NCBI GenBank assembly: GCA_965240325.2
Contig: OZ251225.1
Span: 124,001 to 188,000 of the forward strand
Length of the DNA: 64,000 nt
Source of the DNA: Rebecca billardiae RCC1528
Lineage: Eukaryota; Protista; Haptophyta
Reading direction: 5' to 3'
The notes below the pieces were generated by a model that searched no databases, was not told where the DNA came from, and saw only the letters and a program-made list of their open reading frames with translations. This document shows, in pieces, positions 1 through 49,600 of the stretch. The translations under genes were made by a program, and so were the position numbers. Position 1 is the first letter of the stretch. Each line of letters opens with the position of its first letter.

Positions 1-1385
1 CGCAGCCGCAGCCGCAGCAGCCGCAGCGCGCGGACGCGAGCGCGCGCCGCGCGTCGCCGCCGCTGGACGAGCTGGCCCCGCTCGGCGCGGGCGCAACCGC
101 CATCGTGCGGCTCGTGCGGCACGCGCGCACGCGCCGGCTGTACGCGCTCAAGTCGATGCCGCACGCGCTGCTGCTCGGCGAGGCCGCGGGCGCGGACGGC
201 GGCGCCGAGGCGGAGGCGGAGGAGGAGGGCGCGCGCCCCGCCGAGCCGTGCGCCGAGCGCCCCTCCTCGGCCGCCACCAAGGCCGAGCGCAAGCTCGTGC
301 GCGCGTGGCGCGAGCGCGACGCGTTGCTCGCGCTCGCGGGCCACCCGTGCATCGTGCAGCTGCACGCGCACTGGTGCGACCCGCACGCGCTGCAGCTGCT
401 GCTCGAGCCGCTGCTGGGCGGAGACCTGCACGGGCTGCTCAACGAGTGCGGCGCGCTCACCGACGAGGCCGCCGCCTTCTACTGCGCGGCGGTGGCGCTC
501 GGCCTGGGCGCGGTGCACGAGCTGGGCTGCGCGTACCGGGACGTGAAGGCGGAGAACGTCGGCATCGACGCGGCGGGGTGGCCGCGGCTGCTCGACCTGG
601 GGGGCGTGGTCAAGGTGGCGCCGCCCGCGCGCGCGGGCGGCGGCAGCGCCGGGCTGCTGCCCGTGCCCGCCGCGCCGCCCGGCGGCGGCGGCGGCGGCGG
701 CGCGGGCGCGGGCGCGGGCGCGGGCGCGCCGTGCGCCGTCTCGGCCGCGGGCGGCGCGGGCGGCGGCTGCGCGTCGCCCGAGCCCGCGCCCGCGCCCGGC
801 TCGCCGTGCGGAGGGCTGTGCGCCGAGCCCTCCGCCCCCTCCGCGCGCACCGCCACCCGGTTCGGCACAGTCGAGTACATGAGCCCCGAGATGGTGCAGG
901 GGGCGCGCGCGGACGGCTCCGCGCCCGGCCGGCCGTCGGACTGGTGGTCGCTCGGCGCGCTCTGCTTCGAGATGCTCGTGGGGCGCACGCCGTGCGCCAG
1001 CGCCGCGGACGACGTCGACGCCGTCGCGATCGCGCGGCGCATCCGCGAGGGCGCCGTGCTCTGGCCGCGCCCCGACGAGCCGCAGCTCTCGGCGGGCGCG
1101 CGCGACCTGATCGAGCGGCTGCTCACCGTCGACGACCGCGCGCGGCTGGGCACGCACGGGGACGAGGCGGCGGTGCGCGCGCACCCGTTCCTCGCGTCGG
1201 TCGACGTGGACGCGATCATCAACCGCGTCGGGCTGCACCCGCCCTGGCGCCCGGAGCTCAGCGGCGCCGCGGACGTCAGCCGCTTCGCCGACCTGCCGCT
1301 CGACATGTTCGAGCACAGGAGGCGCGCGCTGCGCAAGCTCTCGGGCGCGGCGCGCGCGTGGGAGCCGCTGCTCGCCGACTTCTGA
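1..1385 (+). CDS. AGC-group Ser/Thr protein kinase (PKA/PKG-like), probably 5'-truncated by the window edge
   Basis: Gly loop LGAGATAIV just upstream of the called ORF start; YALKSM; YRDVKAEN catalytic loop; LLDLG (DFG variant); GTVEYMSPE; DWWSLG; AGC C-tail PPWRPELSGAADVSRF. No in-frame ATG before the Gly loop within the window. Confidence 0.9.
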   Translation, partial: QPQPQQPQRADASARRASPPLDELAPLGAGATAIVRLVRHARTRRLYALKSMPHALLLGEAAGADGGAEAEAEEEGARPAEPCAERPSSAATKAERKLVRAWRERDALLALAGHPCIVQLHAHWCDPHALQLLLEPLLGGDLHGLLNECGALTDEAAAFYCAAVALGLGAVHELGCAYRDVKAENVGIDAAGWPRLLDLGGVVKVAPPARAGGGSAGLLPVPAAPPGGGGGGGAGAGAGAGAPCAVSAAGGAGGGCASPEPAPAPGSPCGGLCAEPSAPSARTATRFGTVEYMSPEMVQGARADGSAPGRPSDWWSLGALCFEMLVGRTPCASAADDVDAVAIARRIREGAVLWPRPDEPQLSAGARDLIERLLTVDDRARLGTHGDEAAVRAHPFLASVDVDAIINRVGLHPPWRPELSGAADVSRFADLPLDMFEHRRRALRKLSGAARAWEPLLADF

Positions 1386-1825
1386 GCGCTCTGCGCAGGG
1401 CTACGTACTGGGCGCCGCAGTGCGGCCGAGTCGTACTGCCCTGCCCGGGCTGCGGGCGCTGGTTGGCACTGCCGCGGCCCACGGCCCTGCCACGGCCACG
1501 GCGGACGGGCTGCGGTCGGTAGTGGCTAGTACCCAGCGGGTGTCTACCCGGCAGCGCGTAATAGTCACGCGCACGCGGCTGACTCAGTGACTCCGCTTAG
1601 GACTGACAGCAGCCCGAGGTCGCTGTCCGACAGCCCCAACGACCCGGTGACAATGTACGGGCGGTACTGTAATGGCGTCAATCACGCCTTAACCAAGTGT
1701 GCACGTTAAAACATAGTAAACTGTACACAAGCAGTGCACAAATAGCTTTTCGCGCACGCATCAGTGCTGATAGGCAACGGAGCAGCAAGCAAGCACTCCC
1801 GCAAACCCAGCGCGTGATCGGAACG

Positions 1826-3519
1826 ATGTCCGCCGCCGACGCCGAAGCCGGCGCCGGGCGCACAAAGCCGTCGTGCAGGGCGTGCCGCCTGTCCAAGGTG
1901 AAGTGCATCTACTCGAACGGTGACGAGGTGGGCGCGTGCGACCGCTGCGCGCGGCTCGGCCTCGCCTGCATGCAGGTGCCGCCGGGCAAGCGCGGGCGCC
2001 CCGCTGGCCTGGTCGGGCCCGCGCTGCAGAAGATGAGGCAGCCGCCCGACGGCTCGCCACCGCCTGCCGCGCGCGGGCACGCCGTGCGCGCCACGCCGAT
2101 ACCGCTTGCCGCGCCCGGCCCGACCACCAGCCTCGCCAGCCCCGCCGAGCCCCTCCTCCCGCCCTCCACGGGGCCGGACATCCTCGAGCAGCTGAGCGAG
2201 CGGCTGATGAAGACGATGATCAGCGGCTCGCGCGCGGAGACGCAGGAGCACAAGGCGAGGGTGCAGCGCACGCTCGTCTCGCAGCTGGTGCTCGTCGCGC
2301 AGCGCGACGGCAACTGCGGTGCGCGCAGGCGCGTCGTCCGACGGCGCGCGGCTGCGCGCGCACCGCCCGCGGCGCGCGCCGGCACGCCCGCGCACCGCTT
2401 GCTCGCAGCCCACGCGCCCCGCCCCGCGCGCTCGCGCGCGCCCCGCGGCGCCCCGCAGAGCGCCTCGGCCGCGCGCTCATCTTCGCCGGGCGCATCGGCC
2501 TCACCCCCGCCGAGGTGCTGCGGCCGCTCTCCGCGCCGGGTGCGAGCATGGACGATCTGCTCGGGCACATGCCCGACTTCATCGCCGAGTGGTTCCACGG
2601 GGAGCGGCCGTGCGTGTTCCGCGCGTTCGCCGACGGGTACGTGCGCGTGCGCGCGAACGGTGCGATGCGTCGGGCGCTCGGCATGGCCGGCACCGCCGCC
2701 GCCACGCCCAGCATCACCGCCGCCGTGCAGCCCGGCCGCGCGGCCACTGGCTTGGCCGCTGGCTTGGCCGCTGGCTCGGCCGCTGGCTCGGCTGCTGGCT
2801 CGGCGGCGCTGCCGGGCCGGCTGGGCACCTCGGCGGCCATCGACGTCGGCGTGGTGGAGGCCGGCCTGCTGCACGCGGTGCTGATGGTGCCCAACGCGGG
2901 CGAGGTGCTCACGAGCGTGCTCGCCAGCATGCTCGAGCAGATCATGTCCGGCGGGGCGCCGCCCGCCCCGGACGTGCACCGGCACGCGCACGGGCACGCG
3001 TCGCAGCCGCTGCTGATCGTGGGCGTGGGCGAGTGCCGCCTGAGCGGCCGCATGGTGGTGCTCGGGGACTCGCAGGCGATGTGGAGCGCGCTGCGCTTCG
3101 TGCCGGTGGGCGCGGCCGAGGACGGCGCGGCCGAGCGCGGTGCGGAGGCGCGAGCGCAGCCACAGCCCGCGCCCACGCCACCGCACCCGGCGCAGCCAGC
3201 GCCCGCCGCCCCGGCACCTCAGCCGCCCACCTCGTCCGCCGACAGCGACGAGCCCCAGGGCACGGTGCAGGAGCTCGCCAGCCTCGTGGGCGACGCGGCG
3301 GACCTCGGGCTCACGCTCGAGGACGTGCATCAAATCCTGTTCAGCACCGGCGCCGACGCGCCTCCTGTCGCGGGCGTGGGCGGCGAGACGGCGCCGGGCG
3401 GCCGCCAGGGCGCGCTGACGGCGCACTCGTTCGCATCGGACGCGGCGTTGCTCGTCGGGCTGAGCGAAGAGGAGGTCGAGCGGCTGCTGCGCGGGCACGG
3501 CGGCACGGCTGGCGAGTAG
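1826..3519 (+). CDS. Zn(II)2Cys6 (GAL4-type binuclear cluster) transcription factor; join(1826..2318,2459..3519)
   Basis: CRACRLSKVKC-x10-CDRCARLGLAC followed by basic KRGRP. A GT..AG intron at 2319-2458 joins the two track ORFs in frame (NC/ERLGRALIF). Confidence 0.88.
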
Positions 3520-3874
3520 CTCGTGTCATCAGGACTAGTGTAAGCATCCTCGCATCTATCATGCAATGATTGTACGTAGTAGGAGTGCTGCTACAGTACT
3601 GCTACTGTACTACTGTATCATGTACTGTACTGCTAATATAGCAGTACTGTAGGAATCTAGCTAGCTACTCTCGGCCCTCAGCTGGTCAGGACGCGCGGTG
3701 TTGTATTTTTGGTTGATACCAGGCCGATCCAAGGGACGACCGCCGCTTGGGCGCGGTCCACCTAGACGCCCTCGAGGTGCCCACAGCGCCGAACGCCCCT
3801 GCACGCCTCACCTCGCCGCGCGCGAGCGCGTTCAAAACGGCCTCCATCGAGGCCCTCTGCCGTGGCCAGCCTTT

Positions 3875-6055
3875 ATGGGCGACCGCTCCGAGTCGGCAGT
3901 GCGCGCGCTGCTCGAGCGCGCGGCGGCGGACGGGCGCCGCCGCCGCGCGCTCGTGCGAGGCCCGACCCTCTTGCTCGGCTCCGCCTGCTGCCTGGTCGGC
4001 CTCCCGCTCATGATCTTCACGAGCAACGTGTGGACGGGCCGCGCCGGGGTGGCTTTCATGCTCACGGGCGGCTGGTTCCTGGTGTGCGCCATGGTACCCG
4101 ACGACGCGGACGCCCCGTACTATGTCGCCGGCTGCTCTGCCGCTGTCGAGCTCGTGCTGGGCGTGTGGGACGTCTTCAACACGCTCAACCAGTTCCGTGT
4201 GACGGAGGCGCAGTGCGGGGCAGGTGCGCCGCGCACGGCTGCGTGCCAGGCGCTCGTCGTCGGCCAGGTCACGCAGGTGTGGGACACGTGCGCCGCCTTC
4301 CTCTCGCTGGGTGTGTTCGTGCACATCCTCGTCGGCCGGTGGCAGCGGCGCGGCCAACCGCGCCGCGCGCGCCGTCGGCTGCTCCTGGTCATGCGCGCGG
4401 TGCTGTTCAGCTACACGCTCACGACCGCAGCGCGCGACGTGGCGGGCGCGGCGGCCTTTGTGGAGGGCAGCAGCGAGCGGCTGCTCGTGCTCCTGCCCAC
4501 GCTCCTCGTCAGCGCGTACGCGCTCGCCATCGCGCTCGTCGGCATGTCCCCCGGCGGGATCGCGCGAGTCCACCGGACTCTGGTGAGCAGGGGCTGGACA
4601 GACGGCGCGAGCTCCGCCGCAGCGATCGCCACCCTCGTGGGTGGCACGCGCCACCCGACGGAGTCGATGGCGCGCGGCATCGCGACGTTGCGCTGCGTGC
4701 CGCTCGATCGGCTCGAGCGCCGCCACCTGCAGCCGCGCGCTCAAGGCCAGCCGCCCATGCTGCCGCGTCGCCGGCTGCTCTCGCAGGCCCAAGCGGGTGC
4801 CTCGCGCCTCTCCAACGCGCTCGGCGCGGAGGCCGGGCTGCGCACGAGCGGCGCGCTCGCGCGGCTGTCGGGCGGTGACGCGCGGCGCAGCTCGTTGGGG
4901 GCGCAGCGCGGTGCGCAGCCGCCGCCCTCGAGTCACGACCTGAGCGTTGACCTGAGCGCGCAGCCGCCATCGGCCACGCCCGGTGCGTGCCTGGACACGT
5001 GCGCCGCCGCGGGCACGGCTGCCGAAACCGGGCCCGCCACGGCAGGGCGGGGTGAGGCGGCTGAAGGGGGGGGCGGCGCGTCCGGCGCGCCGTGGGTCCC
5101 CGCCGAGTACGGCCGCATCGACGCGTTCGTGTCGCACTCGTGAGCGCGCGTGGCCGCGCCGCGCCGCGCCAGCGCCGCGCGGCGGTGCCATGCGCGCACT
5201 GAGCACGTGCGAGGCGCGCGCGCCCCTCCACGCGCCCGTCCGCGCGCCCCATCCTCTCCCAGCTGGAGCGACGACGCCGACCTCAAGTGGGAGGCACTGC
5301 AGGCGTGGCGCGAGCGCTTCAAGGCCAAGCACAGGCGCGAGCCGACGGTGTGGTTCGACTCGCTGTGAGCCGCGCGCGCCGCGCGTGCGCGCCCCGCCCG
5401 TGCCGTTCGGCGCACGGGGGCGTGGCCCTCAGGGCTCACGCGCGAGCCGAGCGCGCCGCCCGCCGCCCGGCGCGCGCCGCGCGTTGCGTGGCAGGTGCAT
5501 CGACCAGAGCTCGATCGGCGAGTCGCTCGCGTTCCTGCCCGTGTACATCGCCGGCTGCCGCGCGCTCCTCGCGCTCGTCGGGCCGACGTATGCGCGCCGG
5601 CTGTGGTGGTGCGCGCTGTGCGCGCTGTGCCGCAGCAGCGCACCGCGAGCGCGCACCGCGCGCCGCGCCGCGTGCCGCCGTGCGTCACGCGCGCTACCGC
5701 GCGCGCCGCGCGCTGCTCCGTGCGCAGCGTGATGGAGCTCTTCGTCTTCGTCGTCACGGGCGGCGAGGAGGACCAGATCGAGTGGGTGGAGCTCGGCGAC
5801 GGGGCGGAGGTGGACGTGCGCGCGTTCGACGTGCGGCAGGCGCAGTGCACGCTCATCGCCGACTCGGACAGGCTGCTCTCGACGATCGATGCGACGTTCG
5901 AGGGCATCGACAAGTTCAACGCGAGCATTCGCGATCTGCTCTACCGCGCCACGGAGAAGCGCAGTAGCGCGCGGCCGGCCCCGGAGCTGGTGTGGCGCAA
6001 CACGTCTTTTTCGGCAAGCGGCCGCAGGGCAGATCGTCGACTACCAGCAGCCTGA
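3875..6055 (+). CDS. Multipass membrane protein with C-terminal TIR-like domain; join(3875..5139,5263..5364,5495..5608,5728..6055)
   Basis: About 6 hydrophobic segments in the N-terminal half. Removing three GT..AG introns gives a continuous DAFVSHSWSDD...VWFDSLCIDQ...LPVYIAGCRALLALVGPTYARRLWCVMELFVF, matching the TIR_2 pattern (FxSHS, W.D, WCxxE). Confidence 0.82.
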
Positions 6056-11022: not shown

Positions 11023-13046
11023 TCATCGCGCGGTGCCGGAGCCGCCGCCCGGCGGGCTGGAGCCGCTGACGGGGACCTGCAGCACCCTCGACGGCCTGCG
11101 CGAGCTGGAGCCCACGGCGCCGGTGTGCGGCACCAGCTCTGCGAGGGCGTTGGCCGCGCCGCGCGGCGCCGCGGCGCCAAAGTGGTGATCGACCGCGTCG
11201 ACGATGGTGGGGGAGGGGCACTTGCCCGGCTGCTGCTGCAGCGAGCCCAGCCGGCGGCGCGTGGGCGAGGCGCCCGAGCTGGGCGGGGGCGCGGCGTGCC
11301 CCAGGCTGGGCGAGGTGGGGTGGGTGCTGGCGGGCCCGCTGGGTGCGCCCGCGCCTGCGGCCGTCGCGGCGGCGGCGCACGCAGCAGCAGCGGCCATGTC
11401 GGGCGGGAGCTGCTCGGCGTCCGACGAGCCGCGCCGGCTGCCGTTGCGGCCGCCGTCCGCGCACGCGTTGGGCGCGTCCGCCCCGCCGGCGTCCGAGGCG
11501 CGGCGGCTGGCGCTCCTGGAGGCGCGGCGGCTGCCGTTGATCGAGGGCGCGGACGAGCGCGTGCTCGCGCCCAACGCGTCGATCCCGGCGCTCAGCCGTC
11601 GGCGCGAGCCCTCGTCGCCGCTCTGGACCGCGCCGCGCACCTCGCGCATGAGCAGCCGCGTGAAGCGCGCCGCGTGCTTGGGCGTCGCGAAGAAGGGCAT
11701 CGTGCGCACGCGGCTGCGGCGCCGGCCGCCGGCGGGCGAGGCGGGGTCGTCCGCTGCGGGCGAGCCCGCGCCCTCCGCCCCCGGCGCCTCCGCCCCCGCC
11801 TCCGCCCCCGCCTCGCCCTCCGCCTCCTCCTCGCCCTCCGCCTCCTCCCTGCGCGCCGCGTTGTCGCGCAGCCGCCTGCAGAACGCCTCCATCTCGGGCA
11901 CGAGCTCGCCAAACAGCGGGCGCACCTCCGTGGAGCCGTCGGCGTAGCGGAAGGTGAACTCGCGCGGGAACATGCGCGCGCGCTGCGCCGGGTCCGTGTC
12001 GATCTGCGGGGCGCGCGGCGCGCGGGCGGGGCGGGCGCGCGCGGCGCGGCGCGCATCAGCCGGGCGCACGCGCCGCCCCGCCCGGTGGGTGCGCGCGCGC
12101 GCGCGTGTTTGCGCGCGTGCGTGTTTGCGCGCGCGCGCACAAGCCTGAGCTGCATGTCCTGCATCGTGCTGCGGCGCGCGATCTCGTGCGCGCGCGCGCG
12201 CAGGCCCTCCGTGTCCACGCTCGGCTGCACCGACAGCCGCGAGTCGGTGCGCGGCGCCGTGCCGAGCAGCATGTTGGAGCTGCGCCGCGTGAGCAGCGGC
12301 GGCGGCTTGAAGGCGGACTGCCCCGAGGCGGACGAGGCGGAGGACTCGCGCCTCGGCCGCGGCCCCGCGCCCTGCCCCGCCGCGCGCTCCATGCCGCAGG
12401 CGCTCTCGCCCGATGCGACGCGCCGCATGCGCGCCTCGGCGGCGGGCGAGGGCGGGAGCTCGGACTGCGCGCCCGGGCTCGGCGGCGCGGCGGCGTACGC
12501 GGGCCAGCGCCGCACGCTGCGCGGCGAGGCGCGCAGGGACGCGTTGCTGCTGGGCGAGGCGCGCGGCGAGCGGCGCGCCGCCGAGTGGCGCGGCGGCAGC
12601 GCGGCGGGCGCGTCCGCGCCGCCGCCGGGCAGTTCTTCGAGCTGCGCGTCGAGCGAGGCGGACGAGTCGGAGCGGCGCATGGAGCGCTCGCCCGGCTGCA
12701 GCAGCAGCAGCTCCGCCGCGCCCGCGCCGTGCGGCGCGGCCTCGGCCTCCGCCGCGGCCTCGGGCGCGGGCGGGTGCGCGGGGTGCAGCAGCGAGACCAC
12801 GTCCGAGCGGCTGAGCGGCGGCGGCTGCACGACGATGGAGGGCGCGCGCACGACGCGCGGCTCGGCGCAGGGCGGCGCGGCGGGCTCGCACGCGTCGCGC
12901 GCCGCCTTGGCGCTCTCGCGCAGCGCCGTCGCCTCCGCGCTCCTCCGCGCCTCGCTGCGCGCCTCCATCGACGCGCGCAGCGCGCGCGCGAGCGCGCGCG
13001 CGTCGTCGGCGCCGTCCGCGCCCGCCGCCGCCGCCGCCGCGGCGGC

Positions 13047-13081
<35 letters not shown>

Positions 13082-16000
13082 CCGCGCGCGCGCCTGCACC
13101 GCCGTCGGCGCACTCGGCGCACACGGCGTCGGCGCGCGCGGCGCGCAGCCCCGCGCCCGGCGCCGCCTGCCCCTCGCGCGCCCCGCTCCCGCCCTCGAGG
13201 TGCGCGAGGAACAGCTCCCCGTACAGCCCCAGGATGGGGCCCACCAAGCTCTCGCGGTCACAGCGCTCGCGCTGCACGCCGCCGATGAGGTGGCCGAGGC
13301 GGCAGCAGGTGGAGTCGCCCTCGAAGACGAGGAGGAAGGAGCGCAGCTCGTCGTCGTCGATCGCGACCGGCCCCTCGGAGCCGTCCGCCGCGGGCGCGAT
13401 GTACATCCGCTCCGGCCCGTTCGCCAGCGCGAAGCACAGCTGCTCGGTGCGCGTCCACAGCCGGCGCGAGTAGGACGCGCGGCCGCACGGCTCGCCCGTG
13501 TCCGCGTGCACGGCGGCGGGGGCGATGGCGAGGCACGCGTGCGCGAGGGAGGAGTAGTAGCCGAGCGAGGCGATCGCGAGGTCCTGCAGCTTGGCGTGCG
13601 CCTGCGGCACGCACATGAAGTCCACCCACACGCGCACCTCGTCCAGCGCCCAGCCGTTGAGCTGCGCCACGCTGCGCGCGCCGCCCACCATCAGATCGTA
13701 CTGCGCGCCGCAGGGGTCGGGGTCGGACCAGGAGTGCCACTGGTGCGAGATGAAGATGAGCCGCTGCGACTCGAGCGCGCACAGCGCGGCCGGGATGTCG
13801 TCGTGCACCTCGTGCGCGCCCTCCGCGCGCAGCTCCTCGAACGCGCGCAGGCAGCCCAGCTGCTCGAACAGCCGGAACGGCACGACACACAGCGGGAACT
13901 GCAGGTGCGCGCGCGCCTGCAGCGCGGCCTGCACCTCCGCCTCGAGCCACTGGCGGCGCTGGCCCTCGCGCATCTGCCGCGCCTTCCACCGGCGCAGCGC
14001 GAGGAGCGCGCAGGCCAGCACCAGCCCCACCGCGCCCGCGCGGCGCAGCACCTGCTGCCACGACATCAGCCGCGCGTGCGACTCCGCGAGCACCTCGTAC
14101 TGCGCGGTGATCGTCTGGTCGCACGCGCCGTCCTCGGCGTACACGCCCGACGCGCAGTCGACGCGGCAGAAGGGCGCGGCGGCGGAGACGCCCGAGACGA
14201 CGTGGTACCCGGGCTCGCAGACGATGGTGCGCTCGGGCGGCGCCTCGAAGTACCAGCGCGCCAGCTCGGGCTCGGCGGGCGCGCAGCTCGGCGGCGCGCG
14301 GCCGTCCGCGGGCGCGGCGGCCGCCGCGTCCGCGCCGCCGCCGTCCGCGCACGCGTCCGCGCCTCCGCCGTCCGCGCCGCCGCCGCCGCCTCGCGGCCGC
14401 CACACGCCCCACTTGCTCCCGCCGTCGGGCGTGCGCTCGGCGGGCCGCGCGCCGAGGACGAGCCAGTCCGCCGCGAGCAGCGCCTCGTCCGTCAGGCAGC
14501 ACCCGCCGCCCGGCGCGGGCGCGCACAGCGGCCCCTCCTCGATGCCCGAGCCGTTGGCCAGCTCGACGCGCGCGCCCGCGGAGGGCGCGCAGAACACGCC
14601 GCCGCCCTTCGAGCGCAGCTCGGCGTGCGCGCTCTCGAGCGTGGCGAGCGCGGCGGGCGAGACGCGCTTCGAGACGGCGCTCAGCGAGTTCGCCCCCTCG
14701 CCCCCGCTCTCCCACGACGCCTCGTGCGCCACCCACTCGTCGCGCAGCACGCGCCCCACAAAGTGGATCACGCCCGGCGCCCAGCCCATCACCGCGGACA
14801 CCAACACCGACTCGCCCAGCAGCGCGCGCACGTCGCCGTTCACGCCGATCGAGGCGCCGGGCTCGGGGCGCTCGCGCGCGCGCGCGGCCTCAGCCTCGTC
14901 CAGGCAGTACGCCGTGTGCGCGTGCCCCTCCAGCGCCAGCTCCGCGCACACCGGCGGCCCCGAGCGCGCGAAGAGGCGCGGCGCCGCGAGCGTGTCGGTG
15001 TGGTGCGCGACCACGCGCGCGCCGTCCTCCACCCACAGCTTCATCGCCGCGGCGGTCTCGCGCCACTCGTGCTCCCACGCGCCGGTGGCGAGGACGCGCA
15101 CCTCGCACCGCGGGTTCGCCCGCCGGCAGCCCAGCGCGAACGCGTTCACGTTGAGCAGCACCACCGGCACCGCCATCGCGACCACGTACCCGGCCACGTG
15201 CACCGGCCGGCGCGCGGCGCCCGGCGCGTCCGCCATGTGCGCGCCCGCGAGCACGCCCGCGAGGTAGAGCTCCTCGTACACGCGGGTGAAGAGGAGCGCC
15301 ATGTGCGGGTGGGGCGTGCGCGACGCGCCCACGCCGCAGATCACGAACCGCGTGCGCGCGCCCTCGCACGCGCGCGTGCCCAGCGCCGCCTGCACGCCGG
15401 CCGCGTGCGCCTGCGTCGTGCCGATCACCAGCTCGTACCCCGAGGCGCACGCGCGCTCCGCGATGCCCGCGACGGCGTCGGGGGCGAAGGGGACGCGCTC
15501 GAGCGCGTCGGTGGCGATGTACGCCTGGAAGTGCGCGTCCGCGCCGATCCGCGCGCGGTCCCAGTTGTGCGTCCACCCCAGGTCCGTCGCCTCCCCCGGG
15601 TAGAGGAACAGCACGCGCAGCTGCGGCCGCGCGGCCACCAGCAGCGGCGTCACCGGGCTCAGCGCCGCGTCGTAGTGCGAGCCGCCGTCGAGGGAGAGCG
15701 CGAGCTCGGCGGGGAGGTGGCGCGACTCGCCCGGCGCGAGCGTGCTCCCGTCCAGCGCCGACGACACCGCGGGCACGAGCGGCATCCGCGCGACCAGCGT
15801 GCGCTCGTCGATGAAGTGCGGGGACACGCTCACGCTCGCGCCGCCCACGCACATGCGCAGCGTCGCGCGCGGCGTCGGGATGAAGCCCGAGCCGTGCACG
15901 GTGAGCTCGACGCCGCCCGTCACGGGGATCACCGACGGCTCCACGCTGAGCAGCGACGGCGCGGGCACGACGCGCAGCAGCGCCGCGTTCGACTCGGCCG

Positions 16001-16370
16001 CGCCGTCGGACACGCTCAGCAGGTACTGCGCGGGCGCGGACAGCAGCGGCGGCGGCAGGTCGACGCGGAGCGAGTGGACGTGCCCGCGCGTGCATGCGCG
16101 CGCGCGCCGGCTCGCCTCCAGGACGTGCACCCCCGTCTCGTTGCCCGCGCGCGGTGAGCCGCCGCCGCCTCCGCCGCCGCCAACCGAGCGCACGAGCACG
16201 CGCAACGGCTGCGCATCCGCGCCGAGCCCGGCGATGCCAGTGAGCGTGAGCTCGACGGACTCGTCCGATCGGCGTGCGACGAGCGGCGACGGCTCGACTG
16301 CCTCGAGCCAGATCGCCGATGGCGCGGCTGCCCCCACCGCGCCGCACACGAGCGCGAGCGCCCCCAGCAT
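11023..16370 (-). CDS. Single-pass receptor-like protein: signal peptide, IPT/TIG domain, Bmp/PnrA-type periplasmic-binding domain, TM, cytosolic TIR/HET-like domain; complement(join(11023..12003,12141..16370))
   Basis: Signal MLGALALVCGAVGAAA; IPT-like SVEPSVIPVTGGVELTVHGSGF; Bmp motifs VLFLYPGEATDLGWTHNWD, GYELVIGTT, YLAGVLAG, NVNAFALG, HHTDT, SIGVNGD; TM AGAVGLVLACALLAL then RRWK; IFISHQW..PDP, VWVDFMCVPQ, YSRRLWTRTE. Phase-0 GT..AG intron at 12004-12140. Confidence 0.8.
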
Positions 16371-16899: not shown

Positions 16900-18315
16900 T
16901 CAGGCCGTGCCCGTGCCCAGCTCCGTGGCCGGGTCTGCCGGGTAGGCGGAGACGTCGACCACCGCGCCGTCCGCGTCGCCGTCGCTGGCCTTGAGGCTCC
17001 CAGCGTTGAGGGTGGCCTCGGCGATCTGCACGGCCTCGGCCGCCGCGTCTTTGACAGCCTGCGGCACCTGCGTGTCGGCGAGCTCGACGAGCCCGAACAT
17101 CTCCGTCATCGTCTGCGCGGCGCGGCACCGGGCGGGCGGCGTGCACGCGGCGGCGGCCGTGAGCCGAGCGGCCGCGGCGCGGTGCGCGCGCCGCGCGCGC
17201 GCAGGCCAGCTCGCGAGCGCGCGCACACACGCACACGCGCACACGCACACACACACACCTGGATGTACAGCCGATTGCGCTCCTTCTCGACCATCGAGCG
17301 GATCTCGTCCTCCTTCTTGCCCGACGACTTGAGCGCGGCGGCGCCGAGCATCAGCGCCGACTCCTGCGGCCCGGTCACGATGCCCTCCACGCCCACCTCC
17401 AGCAGCTTCTCGCGCGCCTTGTCGTCGTTGGCGCGCGCGTAGATGGTGAGCTGCGGGTAGTCGCGCCGCAGCGCCTTGGCCACGCGCAGGCAGTCGGCGG
17501 ACTTGTCCAGCGCGATCACCACGGCCTTGGCTTTCTGCGCGCGCCGCCACGCCGCGCGCCGCGCGGCCGCTCAGCCGCGCGCAACGGGCCTCCTCCGCGC
17601 CGGCGCGCCGCGCGGGGCGCGCGCGCGGCTGATGCGCGGCTGCTGCGCGCGGCTGCGCGCGGCTGTGCGCGCACGTTGAGCAGGCCGAACGCGCGCAGCA
17701 CGTCCGGCCGGCGCGCGTCGCCGTAGAAGACGGGGAGCCCCTTCTCCTGCGCCGCCTGCACGCGCTTCGCGTCCATGTCGCACGCCGTGTACGGCACGAA
17801 CATGTTGCCCAGCAGGTCACACACGACGTTGCCGACGCGGCCGTAGCCGCACACAAGCACCTGCCCGCCGCGGCCGTCCTCGGGCTCCTCGGCGGTCGGC
17901 GAGTCCTCGGCGACGGCGAGGCGCTTCCTGCGCTCCTCCCACACGGAGGCGAGCGTGCTGCCCAGGTCGGCGAGGAACGGCGTCGTCGCCATCGAGAGCG
18001 CCGCGAGCAGCAGCAGCTTCTTGCTCAGCTGCGCGTCGATCACGCCGTGCCCCTGCGCCAGCCCGAAGAGCACAAAGGCAAACTCGCCCGCCTGCGAGAG
18101 CATCACGCCCGTGCGGATCGAGGAGCGCATCTGCAGCCCGCCCAGCTTGCACAGCACGACGGTGATGAACGCCTTGAGCGCGTGCAGCAGCACGAGCAGC
18201 ATCGCCATCTGCGGCAGGTTCGCCGCGAGCAGCCGCAGGTCGATCGCGTACCCGATCGTGATGAAGAAGAGCCCAAAGAGAATCCCGCGGAAGGGCGCAA
18301 TGTCCGCCTCGATCT

Positions 18316-18357
<42 letters not shown>

Positions 18358-19327
18358 GGCGCCAAAGAGGGGCGGGCGGTTGGGTCAGCGGCTCCACCCG
18401 GCGCGTGCGCGCGGCGCGCGCGCGCGCGCGCCCCCTGCCCCCCTTGTTGCGCCTTGCACCTGGTAGCGGTACTTGGACTCAGCGAGCAGCACGCCCGCGA
18501 GGAAGGCGCCGAGCGTGTCCGACAGCCCGAGCGCCTTGGTGAACGTGGACATGGAGAGCACGGTGAAGAGCGTGACCGCGACGAAGGCCTCCTGCGAGTT
18601 GGACCTCGAGACGGTGAGGAACGCGCGGCGGAGCAGCATCGGCCCCACGCCCGCGATCAGCGAGAGCGCCGCCACCGACTTGATGGCCGCCTGCAGCAGC
18701 ACCGCGCCCAGCGCCGCGGACGAGCCGGCCGGGTCGAGCAGCGGCACCAGCACGAGCATTGGCACGACGGCGATGTCCTGGAAGAGGAGGATGCCGAAGG
18801 AGGCGCGGCCGTGCCGCGTCGAGAGCTCCTGCCGCTCCTGCAGCAGCTGGATCACGAACGCGCTCGACGAGAGCGCGAGCGAGCCGCCGACGACGAGCGC
18901 GGCCGCGCGCGGCAGTCCGAACAGCAGCTCGCCGCCGCACGCGAGCGCGAGCGTGGTCAGCACAAACTGGAAGGAGCCGAGGCCAAACGCGTCCCTCGAG
19001 AGCGACTTGAGCCGGTCGATGGAGAGCTCGAGGCCCATCTCGAACAGGAAGAACACCACGCCCAGCTCTGCCAGCACCTCCGTCGTGTGCACGTCCCGCA
19101 CGAGGTGCAGCCCGTTCGGGCCGAGCGCCATCCCGGCCAGCAGGAAGCCGAGGATGGGCGAGAGCTGCAGCTTGGCCAGGATCGGCACGACGAGCGCGGT
19201 GGCGGCGAGGAGCACGAGCGCGTCCTGCGTGCCGGGGGGCAGGCTATTGCTCAGCTCGCTCGCGCTCGCGCGCGCCTGCGCCACCGCCGACTGCACGCCC
19301 GCGGGCAGGGCGGGCAGGCTGATGCCC

Positions 19328-19366
<39 letters not shown>

Positions 19367-20145
19367 GCTCGCTTCGCAGCGCCGGCCGCGGGCGAGGCGG
19401 TCGCGAGCTCGGGCGCCGCGGCGAAGTCCGCCCGCTGCGGAGCGCGCCCGGCGTGTGCGCGTGGCACGCGTAGCCGCCCGGCCGTGGCCTGCTCGGCGGC
19501 TCTCCCGTCGGGCGCCGCCCTGCGCCGCCATCGCCCGGGCCGCGCGCCGCGCGCCGCCGCATGTGTCGCCTGCGCGCACGCGCGGCGCGTGACGCGCGCG
19601 CATCGAGCGCGCGGCGGTGAGCGGAGCGACGCGTGGGGGGCGCAGCACGCCCCGCGCAGACCCGTTCACGCCCGCACATCGCGCCCATCCACCGCCACCC
19701 GCCTGCCCTCCGCCGGGGCGCGCCGCCGAGATGTCGCGCCAGCGCACGCGCGCCCAGTGCGGCGCGCCCGCACCGAGTCCTCGCGCGGCGGAGTCGCTGC
19801 GTGCGACGAGCGGCCAAAGTGTGCGCACTTCAAGACGGCGAGCGAGATGGCCAGGACGCGAAGCGTGCGCGCCAGCCAGCTCGTCAGCTTCCGCCGTATC
19901 CGCGGCGCAGGCATCGGCTGCCCATCGCCGTCGGGCTCGGCCGCGAGCGCGCTCATGTGCGCTGCGCCGCGCGCGCCGGCGCGAGGCACGTGCACGTCGA
20001 GCGCGAGCGAGCGCGGCGAGGTGCGCATGACCGCGCGACGAGCGGCTAGTGGCACGCCATACGGCCGGAGCGCGCGCACGCCCGGCGCGAGCGCGCAGAG
20101 CGCGCCGAGCACGGCGCCGAGCAGCCGTGCGGCATGACGCGGCAT
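16900..20145 (-). CDS. CPA2-family K+/H+ antiporter (KefC/KEA-like) with KTN/TrkA-N domain, probably plastid-targeted, multi-exon
   Basis: LSPILGFLLAG, AELGVVFFLFEMGLEL, LALSSSA, GILLFQDIAVVP, LGAFLAGVLLAESKYRYQ/IEADIAPFRG, SQAGEFAFV, CGYGRVG, FYGDA. Introns resolved at 18314-18459, 17535-17674 and 17113-17258; exon structure between ~19435 and ~19830 not resolved. N-terminal signal peptide MPRHAARLLGAVLGALCALAPGVRA. Confidence 0.92.
18316..18356. repeat. (CAG)n/(CTG)n trinucleotide repeat at the 3' end of an antiporter intron
   Basis: About 13-14 uninterrupted units running up to the acceptor AG at 18315-18314 on the minus strand. Confidence 0.9.
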
Positions 20146-20383: not shown

Positions 20384-21565
20384 ATGGCGACGCGCGCGCT
20401 CACGCTCGCGTTGACCGCGGCGGTGCTGGCACTCACGCGGGTGGAGGAGGCGTCGGCCTTGCGCGCAGCATCGTCGGTGGGCAGATCGGCCGTCCGCGCC
20501 TCGGGCAGCAGCCCGTGCGTCATCCGCATCTTTGGCGTCGGCGGCGGCGGCAGCAATGCGGTCGGGCGCATGCTGAGCGCGGGCACAAAGGGCGCCGACT
20601 TCTTCTGCGTGAACACGGACGTGCAGGCGCTCGACGCGAGGCACCCAGGGTCGGAGGTGCTGCAGATCGGCACGACCGTCACGCGCGGCCTCGGCGCGGG
20701 CGGCGACCCCGCTGTCGGCAAGCTCGCCGCCGAGGAGAGCCAGAAGCTCGTGCTGGACGCGGTGACGGGCACCGACCTCGCCTTCGTCGTCGCCGGGATG
20801 GGCGGCGGGACGGGCTCGGGCGCGGCGCCGGTGATCGCGCAGTGCGCCAAGGAGGCGGGCTGCCTCACCATCGGCGTGGTGACCAAGCCCTTCCTCTTCG
20901 AGGGCGCGCGGCGCATGCGGCAGGCGGTGGAGGCGGTCGCGGCGATGCGCGCGGCCACGGACGCGCTCATCGTCGTGTCCAACGACAAGCTGCTCGCGAG
21001 CGCCTCGGCGGACCTGCCGATCGAGAAGGCGTTCGAGGCAGCGGACGACGTCCTGCGCCAAGGCGTCGTCGGTGCGCGCGCGCGCGCCGCCGCCGGACCC
21101 CGCCCGCGCAGCCTCGCGCCTCGCGGCGGCGCGCTCAGCAGCCGCGCGCGCGCGCGCGCGCCTGCCCCTGCCCGCCGCGCGCCGCCAGGCCTGACCGACA
21201 TCATCACGACGCCGGGGCTGATCAACGTGGACTTTGCGGACGTGTGCGCCGTGATGGCGGATGGCGGCCTCAGCCTGATGGGCGTGGGCAGCGGCAGCGG
21301 CGAGGGCCGCGCCGTCGAGGCCGCGCGCGCCGCCGTCGCCTCCCCTCTGCTCGACTTCCCCGTGTCGAACGCGGCGGCCGTGCTCTTCACGCTCACGGGG
21401 CCAACCGACCTCGCGCTGAGCGAGGTGAACGCGGCGGCGAGGCTGATCACAGAGAGCGCGCGGGACGACGCGAACATCATCCTCGGCGCGCTCGTCGACC
21501 CCAGCCTCGACGCGTCCTCGACCGTCACCGTCACGGTCGTCGCCACCGGCATGGACGCGGACTGA
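20384..21565 (+). CDS. ftsZ: Organellar (probably plastid) division GTPase FtsZ; join(20384..21071,21189..21565)
   Basis: GVGGGGSNAV, NTDVQAL, TRGLGAG, AGMGGGTGSG, VVTKPFLFEG, NDKLL, T7 loop GLINVDFADV, VTVVATG. Signal peptide plus Ser/Ala/Arg-rich transit-like segment. A 117-nt GT..AG intron accounts for the low-complexity insert in the track ORF. Confidence 0.97.
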   Translation: MATRALTLALTAAVLALTRVEEASALRAASSVGRSAVRASGSSPCVIRIFGVGGGGSNAVGRMLSAGTKGADFFCVNTDVQALDARHPGSEVLQIGTTVTRGLGAGGDPAVGKLAAEESQKLVLDAVTGTDLAFVVAGMGGGTGSGAAPVIAQCAKEAGCLTIGVVTKPFLFEGARRMRQAVEAVAAMRAATDALIVVSNDKLLASASADLPIEKAFEAADDVLRQGVVGARARAAAGPRPRSLAPRGGALSSRARARAPAPARRAPPGLTDIITTPGLINVDFADVCAVMADGGLSLMGVGSGSGEGRAVEAARAAVASPLLDFPVSNAAAVLFTLTGPTDLALSEVNAAARLITESARDDANIILGALVDPSLDASSTVTVTVVATGMDAD

Positions 21566-46600: not shown

Positions 46601-49600
46601 GGGCGCGCGCGCGCCGCCCGCGCCCACGAGCCACGCGCGCCACGCAAAGTCGTGCGCCGCCTCCGCCTCTGCGCCGTCGGCGAGCTCGGCGTCCGCAGCG
46701 GCGTCGATGGTGGCGCGGAGGACGAGGCGGCCGCTGCTGCGCTGCCACGTGGGCGCGGCCTTGCGCGCGGCGAGCGGCACGAGGCGCAGCGCTGGCAGCG
46801 GCGCCGAGGCCGCCGCCACCTCGACCCTCGCCTCCGCCGCCGCGGGCGTGAGCGCGGGCGCGCCGGGCGCGGACACGAGCACGCGCACGAGATACGCCGC
46901 GCCGTGCGGCAGCGCGCCCGGCGGCAGCAGCAGCGTGGGCGAGGTGGCGTTGGGCAGGTCGAGCTCGACGGGCGCGCCGTCTGCCGCGCGCGCCACAGCC
47001 CACGCGAACGCGAGCCCGCCGCCTGCCGCCTCGTTCGGGTTGGCCGAGGCGGAGGCGTCCAGCCGCACCGCGTCGGCGCCGCCCACGCGCGCGGCGTTCG
47101 GCGTGAGCGCGGCGCGCAGCGGCATGTACGGCACGCGCAGCGAGACGTCGGCGCTCGCGCTGAGCTCGGGCGCCGCGGCCATCGTCGCGAGCACGCGCAG
47201 CGTATACGCGTGCCCCGCGCTGAGCGCCCACGGCGGCAGCCGCAGCGTCGCGCCGGCGGCATCGCTCAGGTCGGGCACGCGCGGCGCCGCGGCACTCGGC
47301 GCGGCCGAGCCGCCGGGGCCGTCGCCGTCGTCGCGCGTCACGTTGAGCACCGCCCAGCCGAAGCGCACCTGCGCGGAGAGCGTGGATGGCCAGCACGGGG
47401 ACAGCCCGACGTTCGCCGAGAGCCGCACGGCGCTGTCCGCGCGCGCGAGCACGCCCGACGACCGCCCATCCACCTCGACGCTCGGGCCGTCCGGCGGCGC
47501 GCGCGCCACGGCGTGCGTCGCGGGCGCGGACGCGATGCCGAGCGCGGAGGTAAGGACGAGGGAGAAGACGAAGCCGCCCTCGGCGCCGAGCGCGGACGGG
47601 CCGAGCTCGAGCACCGCCTGCGTCGGCGGCAGCGCCTCGAGCAACGCCGACAACGCCGCCACGGTCGCGGCGGGCGGCGGGTCTGCCGCAAGCGGCGCCA
47701 CGCGCCACTCAAAGGAGAGAGGCAAGACACCGCCCCCGCCGCCCACGCCGCCGACGAGGCGGAGGGAGGCGTCGGCGCACGTCGGTAGCACGCGCGCGCC
47801 GGACACGCTTGCGATGGGCGCGGCGCACGCTGAGCTCACGCCGCACGGGGCGTCCGCCGAGATCACCACGCTCGCCGCAGCCGCGTACGCGTGCGCCGCG
47901 CACGGCGCGGCGGGCGCGCGCGCCGCGCACGCGACGTGGGCGATGACCCCAGCGCGCACGCCCACGCGGTCGCCCGGCCGGACGCGCGAGGCCGCGCGCA
48001 GGTTCACGACGAGCGAGCGGTCGTCCCGCCAGTAGCACTGCCGCTCGCCTTCGCCGCCGTCGGCCGCGTCGGCCGCGGCCGCGTCGCCGGCCACGAGGCC
48101 GAGCGTCTCGTCGTCGAGCAGCGGCGCGCACCGCGCCAGCCCGGCGTTCAGCCCGCCGCGGTCGGTCGGCGCGTCGAAGCGAAGCACGAGGCTGGTGGCG
48201 CTCGAGTCGAACGCGGCGGAGAGCAGGGCCGGCGCGGCGAGCGGCGGCGGCGGCGGCGGTGCCGACGGCGGCGGCGGCGGCGGGCCTGGCGGCGGGCTCG
48301 GCGGCGGCAGCGGAGGCTGTAGCGGTGGCGGCGCGCTCGGCGGTGGCGCTGACTCGCCGGAGGGCGGTGGGCTTGACGGCGGGCTCGGTGACGGTGGCGC
48401 GAGCAGCAGGCTCGGCGGAGGGCTTGGAGGCGGGCTCGGTGGCGGCGGCGCAGGTGGCGGCGAAGGAGGCGGACTGGGCGGCGGGTTCGGTGGCGGTGGC
48501 GCAGGTGGCGGCGACGGAGGCGGGCTTGGAGGCGGGCTCGGTGGCGGCGGGGCCGGCGGCGAGGGCGGCGGGCTCGGTGGCGGGCTCGGCGGCGGTGGCG
48601 CCGGTGGCAGCGACGGAGGCGGGCTGGGCGGCGGGCTCGGTGGCGGTGGCACAGGTGGCGGCGACGGAGGCGGGCTTGGCGGCGGGTTCGGAGGCGGCGG
48701 CGCCGGTGGCGGCGACGGAGGCGGGCCGGGCGGCGGGCTCGGCGGCGGTGGCGCCGGTAGCAGCGACGGAGGTGGGCTGGGCGGCGGGCTCGGCGGCGGC
48801 GGCGCCGGTGGCGGCGACGGAGGCGGGCTCGGAGGCGGGTTCGGTTGCGGCGGCGCACGTGGCGGCGACGGAGGCGGACTGGGCGGCGGGTTCGGTGGCG
48901 GTGGCGCAGGTGGCGGCGACAGAGGCGGGCTTGGAGGCGGGCTCAGTGGCGGCGGCGCAGGTGGCGGCGAAGGAGGCGGGCTTGGAGGCAAGCTCGGCGG
49001 CAGCGGCGCCGGTGGCGGCGACGGAGGCGGGCTTGGAGGCGGGCTCGGCGGTGGCGATGGCGGCAGCATCGGCGGCGGAGTCGGCGGCGGCGATGGTGGC
49101 ACCGATGGCGGTGGTGACGGTGGCGGCGCCGGCGGTGGCGGGCCCGGCGGCGGGCTCGGCGGTGGCAATGGCGGCGGCACCGGAGGTGGGCTCGGCGGCG
49201 GCGATGGTGGCACCGATGGCGGTGGTGACGGTGGCGGCGCCGGCGGTGGCGGGCCCGGCGGCGGGCTCGGCGGTGGCAATGACGGCGGCACGGGAGGTGG
49301 GCTCGGCGGCGGCGATGGTGGCACCGATGGCGGTGGCGACGGTGGCGGCACCGGCGGTGGCGGACTCGGCGGCGGTGGAGGCAGCGGCCTCGGCGACGGC
49401 AGGCTCGATGGCGGCGGGCTGGGTGGTGGCGGCGGCGGCGGGCTCGGCGGCGGCGGTGATGGCGGCGGAGGCGGCGGCGGGTTGGGTGGGGGCAGGCTCG
49501 GCGGTGGCGGCGGCGGCGGGCTGGGCGGGGGCGGGCTGGGCGGCGGTGGTGGTGGCGAGGATGACGGTGGCGGATTAGGTGGCGGGCTCGGCGGCGGGCT

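Follow-up and report, generated by a model that had tools for sequence, protein, structure and literature searches.

The window analyzed here, a 64,000-nucleotide stretch of the genome of the haptophyte Rebecca billardiae RCC1528 (contig OZ251225.1, positions 124,001 to 188,000; positions below are those of the window), carries on its minus strand, at 11023-16370, what we predict to be one gene of expressed type for a type I single-pass receptor-like protein. From the N terminus onward, its product would combine a signal peptide, one or more TIG domains, a bacterial-type Bmp/PnrA domain, a Cys-rich stalk, one transmembrane helix, a cytosolic HET/TIR-like domain, and a long tail of low complexity. 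A first-pass annotation of the window had listed these elements, and all of them were found on the minus strand in the order it gave and close to where it had placed them; its interpretation of the whole as a receptor of Toll-like topology, i.e., an ectodomain, one transmembrane helix, and a cytosolic HET/TIR-like domain, holds as well. We have high confidence in this architecture and in the family membership described below. A Bmp-ectodomain single-pass receptor with a HET/TIR-like output is the overall explanation that we prefer, with moderate confidence.

Gene model and protein layout

The gene consists of two exons (Table 1) and its product is approximately 1736 residues long. All recognizable domains are contained in an uninterrupted open reading frame (ORF) on the minus strand, 16370..11592. 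An open frame by itself is weak evidence at 80% GC, where long ORFs occur in every frame, and GC content in this stretch ranges from 62 to 81% in 2-kb windows; the periodicity of GC content at third codon positions (GC3) is the evidence for coding here. In-frame GC3 lay between 0.88 and 1.00 over codons 1 to 1410 (at least 0.97 from codon 121) in exon 1 and between 0.92 and 0.98 in exon 2, from 12003 down to the stop codon at 11025-11023, which shows continuous coding over both exons. Immediately beyond the two ends of the gene, upstream of the ATG and downstream of the stop, GC3 was approximately 0.5. Given this drop on both sides, the gene limits were set at 11023 and 16370, which equal those of the first-pass annotation.

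The change of frame between the two GC3-rich frames is accounted for by a 137-nt intron that joins them. Introns of the stretch are of the GT-AG type, and in this one the donor GT at 12140-12139 follows a CTT codon, while the acceptor AG at 12005-12004 precedes ATC. The donor sequence, GTGCGC, is similar to the GTGAGC donors of a neighboring HET/TIR-like membrane gene described below. A GC donor (CAG followed by GC) was discarded because it breaks the frame, whereas the GT at 12140 fits. When compared by eye, the junction peptide, QLRL followed by IDTDPAQRARMFPREFTFRYA, parallels FLDLIDANRDKIFPPRFTFRVA of a relative, P0015, and the residues flanking the junction fit the family motif of the relatives.

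Ahead of the Ig-like TIG domain detected by Pfam, residues ~20 to 135 probably form a second TIG-like beta domain, as judged from the sequence. The spacer and stalk between the Bmp domain and the membrane had no Pfam match; four of the five stalk cysteines lie within the small Cys-rich segment noted in the first-pass annotation, and Ephrin_rec_like or EGF modules occupy this position in relatives. The transmembrane helix has Arg-Arg on each side and is followed by a basic RRWKARQ sequence (positive-inside). Another strongly hydrophobic stretch, at residues 396 to 414, belongs to the core of the Bmp fold. Beyond the cytosolic domain, a linker without Pfam match covers 350 residues, compared with 45 to 135 in relatives. 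It leads, in what would be a long disordered tail, to a C-terminal motif that is present in 61 of 136 family tails and that starts here at 11973, in the frame of exon 2.

A Bmp-family ectodomain and a HET-type cytosolic domain in an algal receptor family

The ectodomain is a Bmp-family domain. The first-pass annotation had placed such a domain at approximately 14450 to 15625, and Pfam, PDB phmmer, and Foldseek searches all bore this out. The Pfam PF02608 profile scored 36.1 bits with the whole ORF and 41.1 bits with the domain alone (cutoff, 24.1). In phmmer searches of the PDB, both lobes aligned with AtzT (6pi5; E = 1.3e-16) and with a Bmp protein of Brucella (3s99; E = 2e-15). A Foldseek search with an AlphaFold2 (AF2) model of the domain returned only Bmp-family proteins as its top 20 chains (AtzT, 3s99, RfuA, PnrA, Lbp, and BmpD), and the match to AtzT had an E value of 6e-14 and template modeling (TM) scores of 0.55/0.61, obtained with a model of low confidence (predicted local distance difference test [pLDDT], 59.5). 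A word-index search of a 5.8-billion-protein index retrieved only five Bmp relatives of bacterial size, with 26 to 33% identity, and a scan of metagenome contigs with the Bmp domain detected no ortholog. The two-lobe fold is homologous to that of bacterial Bmp/PnrA/AtzT proteins (solute-binding protein cluster B-I), but those are lipoproteins and partners of ABC transporters, whereas the domain described here is an internal part of a eukaryotic single-pass receptor; no lipobox was found in this protein, and the neighboring genes encode a Kef-type antiporter, FtsZ, and a kinase. Relative to the bacterial proteins, the domain also has two insertions and additional Cys pairs, both eukaryote-specific, and there are 20 cysteines across the ectodomain.

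To examine the binding pocket, residues were transferred from the guanine-binding protein AtzT (PMC6834077) through the 6pi5 phmmer alignment. Tyr45 of AtzT corresponds to Trp, Ser97 to Thr, Glu165 to Val, Trp194 to Trp, and Asn218/Asn220 to His/Asp. An aromatic sandwich (Trp/Trp) is thus kept in common with the bacterial proteins, and the His/Asp pair is as in adenine-bound Brucella 3s99, whereas the purine-bonding Glu of the bacterial proteins is lost. A purine-type ligand is predicted from these residues, although we regard it as doubtful rather than probable; given the loss of the Glu165 equivalent, the ligand may be something else. The first-pass annotation had suggested nucleoside sensing. 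The Bmp domain itself stands, but the nearest solved relatives bind guanine or adenine, and our ligand guess is for this reason a base and not a nucleoside.

The cytosolic region comprises a long juxtamembrane helix and a domain of approximately 230 to 260 residues, whose identity as a divergent HET-type domain is well supported at the family level. Each of the three motifs pointed out in the first-pass annotation, FISHQW (13737-13754), WVDFMCVPQ (13602-13628), and YSRRLWTRTE (13443-13472), was found once in the window. Seven residues of these motifs (S875, W878, Q923, R970, W972, R974, and E976) are invariant in an alignment of 106 homologous domains, to whose members the window domain is 28 to 41% identical, and the motifs are therefore not chance occurrences. 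Residues E845, S875, W878, Q923, R970, W972, R974, and E976 (ORF numbering) are invariant in this alignment, and in an AF2 model of the cytosolic domain (pLDDT, 95.5; predicted TM score [pTM], 0.92) the invariant residues are found where strands A and B end on their C-terminal side and where helix C begins. The three motifs present, in order, what we take to be the conserved blocks of HET domains: F/Y-x-S-H/Y-x-W, W-x-D-x-x-C/S-I/V-x-Q, and R-x-W-x-x-x-E. A definition of these blocks has been published (PMC4986451).

Profile and fold searches with the family likewise pointed to HET. The Pfam HET profile (PF06985) matched 36 of the 106 members at E ≤ 1 (best, 1e-5), while every other Pfam family matched at most two. 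These HET matches were colinear, with residues ~75 to 170 aligned to profile positions 1 to 100 of 146, and a single member, the relative P0027, exceeded the gathering score (23.7 bits; cutoff, 22.5). The top cluster of an Atlas language-model search was named heterokaryon-incompatibility (score, 0.94). An ESM Atlas fold search returned an Ascomycota TPR (NLR-like) cluster with a TM score of 0.70, an Ascomycota HET cluster with a TM score of 0.52, and haptophyte clusters that carry the same fold as a fusion with Ank, MORN, LRR_6, or HNOB domains; an Atlas search of the core limited to named clusters gave no usable match. When searched alone, the cytosolic domain matched nothing in NCBIfam or among PDB sequences.

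HET has been described as a remote homolog of TIR that occurs in haptophytes and stramenopiles (PMC4986451). We base TIR kinship on this published relation, on a compatible fold, and on the invariant W-x-x-x-E at predicted helix C. In the AF2 model, E976 lies within helix 179-192, and the spacing of W972-x-x-x-E976 is the same as that of W638 and E642 in SARM1 (PMC8266388); E976 may thus be equivalent to the TIR catalytic Glu. Pfam TIR families (PF01582, PF13676, and related) matched neither the window domain nor the 106 relatives. A Foldseek search of the PDB with the cytosolic model gave nothing significant, its first row being a TIR-STING protein, with plant TIRs amid flavodoxin-like folds. 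Of the TIR/HET-like domain proposed in the first-pass annotation, the HET part is therefore sustained through the relatives, while no match to a TIR profile was obtained. TIR-like catalysis by this domain is predicted tentatively, at a little less than an even chance.

An exhaustive profile search with the cytosolic domain retrieved 2341 representative clusters at E ≤ 1e-3, with 386 at ≤ 1e-30. Against the family hidden Markov model (HMM), whose alignment includes the window domain, this domain scored 279 bits (E = 1e-84). The first-pass annotation had proposed looking for the same cytosolic domain under other ectodomains, and these were readily found (ANF/PBP1, Cache, SBP, phosphonate-binding, and LRR). 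In 76 relatives, we recorded ANF_receptor (11), Peripla_BP_6 (10), Ephrin_rec_like (10), dCache_1 (5), SBP_bac_1 (4), SBP_bac_8 (4), Phosphonate-bd (2), and LRR_8 (2), together with PBP_like_2, NMT1, sCache_2, CUB, and others, and almost all full-length relatives have a hydrophobic helix approximately 30 residues ahead of the domain. Sensor domains are thus exchanged over a fixed assembly of transmembrane helix, juxtamembrane helix, HET-like domain, and C-terminal motif. The protein described here has the features of this family: the helix ~30 residues ahead of the domain, the invariant residues, the C-terminal motif, and a ligand-binding ectodomain. No Bmp ectodomain was found among the 150 family members listed when these were searched with the Bmp HMM.

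The family extends over haptophytes, diatoms, and dinoflagellates, and its named members come from Emiliania huxleyi, Isochrysis, Chrysotila, Thalassiosira, Skeletonema, Polarella, Effrenium, and Yihiella; all members that were looked up are annotated as hypothetical or uncharacterized. Emiliania/Gephyrocapsa huxleyi and other haptophytes are the source of the best protein relatives. The E. huxleyi proteins retrieved by a word search combine two ANF_receptor/Peripla_BP_6 domains and a transmembrane helix with the same cytosolic domain (38% identity over 100% of it; E = 1e-39). The closest homolog, P0005 of E. huxleyi (1510 residues), has the same layout and is encoded by one ORF of a 4.9-kb contig that might be a transcript assembly; it clusters with XP_005792397.1, is 38 to 41% identical across the entire cytosolic domain, and shares the C-terminal motif. 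The E. huxleyi models XP_005792397.1 and XP_005774933.1 are 879 residues long and bear just the name 'Receptor ligand binding region domain-containing protein', and contig-derived forms in the P0005 cluster (IMG/MMETSP) have 1510 to 1570 residues and include the transmembrane helix and the HET/TIR-like domain; the E. huxleyi reference annotation seems to truncate family members. No paralog was detected in the window by tblastn of the ORF or with the family HMM over six frames, and a scan of metagenome contigs with the cytosolic domain detected no ortholog.

The first-pass annotation had regarded this architecture as undescribed. That claim does not hold, since a receptor class with a PBP-like region, a transmembrane helix, and a TIR domain has been reported (PMC12489294). 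In Gephyrocapsa huxleyi, cogent1101_i1 has an extracellular leucine-binding-/EGF-like portion, a helix that crosses the membrane, and, inside the cell, a TIR domain with a conserved Glu836, and shows induction 0.5 h after addition of virus (PMC12489294, New Phytol 2025). As in our protein, an extracellular region of periplasmic binding protein (PBP) type, a Cys-rich module, and one transmembrane helix precede a TIR-superfamily domain with a conserved Glu, and cogent1101_i1 very probably belongs to the same family, the likeness being drawn from its published description. However, the sensor of the G. huxleyi receptors is of the leucine-binding/ANF type (PBP1), whereas here it is of the Bmp/PnrA type and preceded by TIG, and the tail is far longer here than in the receptor-like TIR proteins of G. 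huxleyi. The present gene is thus a new sensor variant (Bmp) of a recently noticed kind of receptor and not a wholly new architecture. A literature search turned up no publication that deals with Bmp domains in receptors of eukaryotes, nor any on HET-type receptors in algae.

Other known systems share parts of this design. Fungal HET proteins (PF06985; Podospora HET-E, Neurospora TOL, and HET-6) have the three colinear blocks in common with our domain, a similar predicted fold, and sub-threshold to threshold Pfam matches in its relatives. They are soluble, or have HET at the N terminus of an NLR, whereas here the domain is anchored in the membrane beneath an ectodomain and is itself below Pfam detection; in addition, it is extended by a further beta-alpha element at its N terminus and capped by helices at its C terminus. 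Fungal HET sets off incompatibility cell death, which the receptor described here is not known to do. Toll-like receptors (TLRs) carry an LRR ectodomain, which is absent here, the ectodomain being TIG plus Bmp, although some relatives do carry LRR_8. More broadly, in contrast to Toll/IL-1 receptors and TIR NADases (SARM1, plant TIR-NLRs, and bacterial ThsB/SpbK), the protein lacks an LRR/Ig ligand domain and a TIR HMM match, its sensor is a small-molecule clamshell, and its catalysis is a prediction. Natriuretic-peptide and guanylyl cyclase receptors follow the same logic, in which a type I PBP clamshell is joined by one helix to an enzyme-like output, but the binding-protein family and the output domain differ, and no homology was detected in the cytosolic part.

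Proposed function and alternative explanations

In the mechanism that we propose, a small heteroaromatic ligand would bind in the Bmp cleft. A purine base or something closely analogous to one is the likeliest candidate, since the domain retains the Trp/Trp sandwich along with the His/Asp pair seen in the Brucella protein with adenine bound. Closure of the cleft would alter receptor pairing or clustering, and this would place the HET/TIR-like domains next to one another in the cytosol, as happens in TLRs, SARM1, and plant TIRs. The clustered domains might then cleave NAD+ or a related nucleotide via E976, either producing a signal or depleting NAD+; alternatively, homotypic contacts and the C-terminal motif might serve to bring in a partner. 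Extracellular purines would in this way be sensed as a cue of damage, infection, or nutrients. Both the identity of the ligand and the NAD-cleaving activity are inferred, and a chemosensory role is as plausible as an immune role given the nutrient-type sensors in the family.

Several observations weigh against a Bmp-ectodomain receptor with a HET/TIR-like output. The gene model and its splice junction were derived solely from genomic sequence, and the hydrophobic core of the transmembrane helix spans just ~15 residues. The AF2 model of the Bmp domain, built on a shallow alignment, is of low confidence (pLDDT, 59.5; pTM, 0.62), and the purine-bonding Glu (AtzT Glu165) that is Val here is kept in five of five bacterial relatives. 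The cytosolic domain alone (residues 790 to 1060) had no Pfam match at E ≤ 10, HET and TIR included; PADLOC TIR models matched none of the 106 members; and a profile search of the PDB with the 106-sequence alignment returned no TIR, only a spurious PAS match with an E value of 0.64. Finally, enzymatic activity is not established even for fungal HET domains (PMC10197012).

The alternatives differ in which of these points they take up. The locus could hold two separate genes, or be mis-joined or decaying, its long ORF being an artifact of 80% GC, at which stop codons are rare. Spurious ORFs of hundreds of codons indeed occur in every frame of the stretch, and the 350-residue linker and the tail are of low complexity and without homologs in Pfam. 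Yet it is the proposed frames alone that have a GC3 close to 1.0, with a collapse right at the ATG and the stop, and every family-invariant residue is intact; moreover, the cytosolic domain needs an upstream transmembrane helix, as in nearly all relatives, and the family motif sits in exon 2 in the very frame predicted by the intron. We therefore consider this explanation highly improbable. A different proposal concerns the cytosolic domain, which might be another Rossmann-like enzyme (a GT-B half of fucosyltransferase type, or an enzyme of nucleoside deoxyribosyltransferase/LOG type) that resembles HET/TIR just through a shared fold. With the sequence profiles indicating HET alone (36 of 106 members, and no more than two for any other Pfam family), the three HET blocks present in order, just half of a GT-B fold that would be available, and fold-search rows that are tied, with Z differences below 1, this is quite unlikely.

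A more serious contender, though still an unlikely one, keeps the architecture but makes the cytosolic domain a noncatalytic adaptor or scaffold, so that the family would be one of nutrient or chemical sensors that signal by homotypic association and the FP..LFGEL motif. Many of the family's sensors are binders of nutrients or metabolites (phosphate-/phosphonate-binding, SBP_bac_1/8, NMT1, amino-acid-type PBP1, and Cache), the C-terminal motif is conserved in 61 of 136 tails, the TIRs of animal TLRs are adaptors, and the activity of HET is unproven (PMC10197012). What speaks for catalysis is that the Glu of W-x-x-x-E and the strand-end Ser, Gln, and Arg are invariant in 106 of 106 domains, a pattern more like an active site than an interaction surface; the response of the receptor-like TIR gene of G. 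huxleyi to virus within 0.5 h (PMC12489294) also argues against an adaptor in a nutrient sensor. Returning to the explanation that we prefer, its furthest extension would define a new purinergic receptor class in eukaryotes, in which extracellular purine bases, for instance from lysed or virus-infected neighbors, directly switch on a tethered HET/TIR-type nucleotide-cleaving enzyme that makes a second messenger or depletes NAD+. More widely, haptophytes, diatoms, and dinoflagellates would then have in common a 'one-component' receptor system in which bacterial-type PBP, SBP, and Cache sensors are wired to a TIR-superfamily output that replaces kinases and cyclases. We regard this extension as improbable; if true, it would mean that a HET-type domain had been assigned a biochemical function for the first time.

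Genomic surroundings and significance

Table 1. Coordinates of the receptor-like gene, its predicted parts, and neighboring genes in the window
Feature	Position	Strand	Details and basis
Coding exon 1	12141..16370	-	1410 codons from ATG at 16370; ORF and in-frame GC3
Intron	12004..12140	-	137 nt, GT..AG, phase 0; C-rich tract before AG; (CG/CA)-rich simple sequence; direct reading
Coding exon 2	11023..12003	-	326 codons plus stop at 11025-11023; in-frame GC3
Signal peptide, predicted	16320..16370	-	residues 1 to ~17; hydrophobic N terminus
IPT/TIG domain	15768..15959	-	residues 138-201; Pfam PF01833, E = 4.7e-6, 26.9 bits (cutoff, 20.9)
Bmp/PnrA-type binding domain, both lobes	14511..15623	-	residues ~250-620; Pfam PF02608, PDB phmmer, Foldseek
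Gly/Ala/Asp-rich spacer and Cys-rich stalk	14052..14510	-	C696, C718, C735, C739, C750; direct reading
Single transmembrane helix	13995..14051	-	residues 774-792; hydropathy
Juxtamembrane helix and HET/TIR-like cytosolic domain	13191..13994	-	residues 793-1060; family search, alignment, AF2
E976 codon	13443..13445	-	invariant Glu of W-x-x-x-E, start of predicted alpha-C helix; candidate catalytic residue
Low-complexity Ala/Gly/Arg/Ser/Pro-rich linker	12141..13190	-	residues 1061-1410; coding by GC3
C-terminal family motif	11869..11973	-	FPxxF ... LFG[D/E]L[V/I] ..ME; relatives' tails
Kef-type cation/H+ antiporter	17516-19467	-	Na_H_Exchanger and TrkA_N, split by introns
FtsZ	20384-21565	+	Tubulin and FtsZ_C, N-terminal extension
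Protein kinase ORF	105-1385	+	
ORF with fungal-type Zn(2)-Cys(6) cluster	1697-2884	+	22.7 bits (cutoff, 21)

The first-pass annotation had noted a second TIR-like membrane gene 5 kb away. Such a gene is present on the plus strand at approximately 3.9 to 6.05 kb, with split motifs. This second HET/TIR-like membrane gene (3698-6052) opens with an ORF for a multiple-transmembrane region at 3698-5140, which has at least four hydrophobic helices and ends in IDAFVSHS. Its further exons at 5261-5365, 5496-5606, and 5732-6052 carry the remaining motifs (W.., VWFDSL and CIDQ, YARRLW and ..MEL), which are interrupted by introns with GTGAGC donors, and the GC3 phase tracks the frame of each exon. Searched as separate exons, the gene matched neither the family HMM nor Pfam, the domain being too divergent and split by introns.

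Among the other neighbors, the FtsZ gene is presumably an organelle-division gene, and the Zn(2)-Cys(6) cluster is a domain uncommon in algae. Similar (CGCG/CACG)n simple sequence occurs within introns of two different genes, at 12004-12140 and at ~17150-17250; its translation gives runs of Ala-Arg-Thr-His, and it may serve as a flag for introns in this genome. Farther along, at 48240-54000, lies a G-rich tandem array of approximately 5.7 kb (80% GC; GC skew, +0.34 to +0.46) with periods of 51, 102, and 174 bp, the 174-bp unit at 50804-53842 being present in 17.5 copies with 97% identity; if coding, the array would give Gly-rich repeats.

Marine phytoplankton must sense dissolved metabolites, neighbors, and viruses, and hardly any of their surface receptors are known. 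As a single locus known from its sequence, the gene described here is a generator of hypotheses. It belongs to a large algal family that couples bacterial-type small-molecule modules to one cytosolic HET/TIR-like domain, and the virus-responsive gene of G. huxleyi (PMC12489294) hints at a link with the infections that terminate blooms. Within this family, the Bmp version offers a narrow guess at the ligand (purines) and thus a possible entry point for de-orphaning its members, and it could help in asking whether HET-type domains are enzymes like TIRs.

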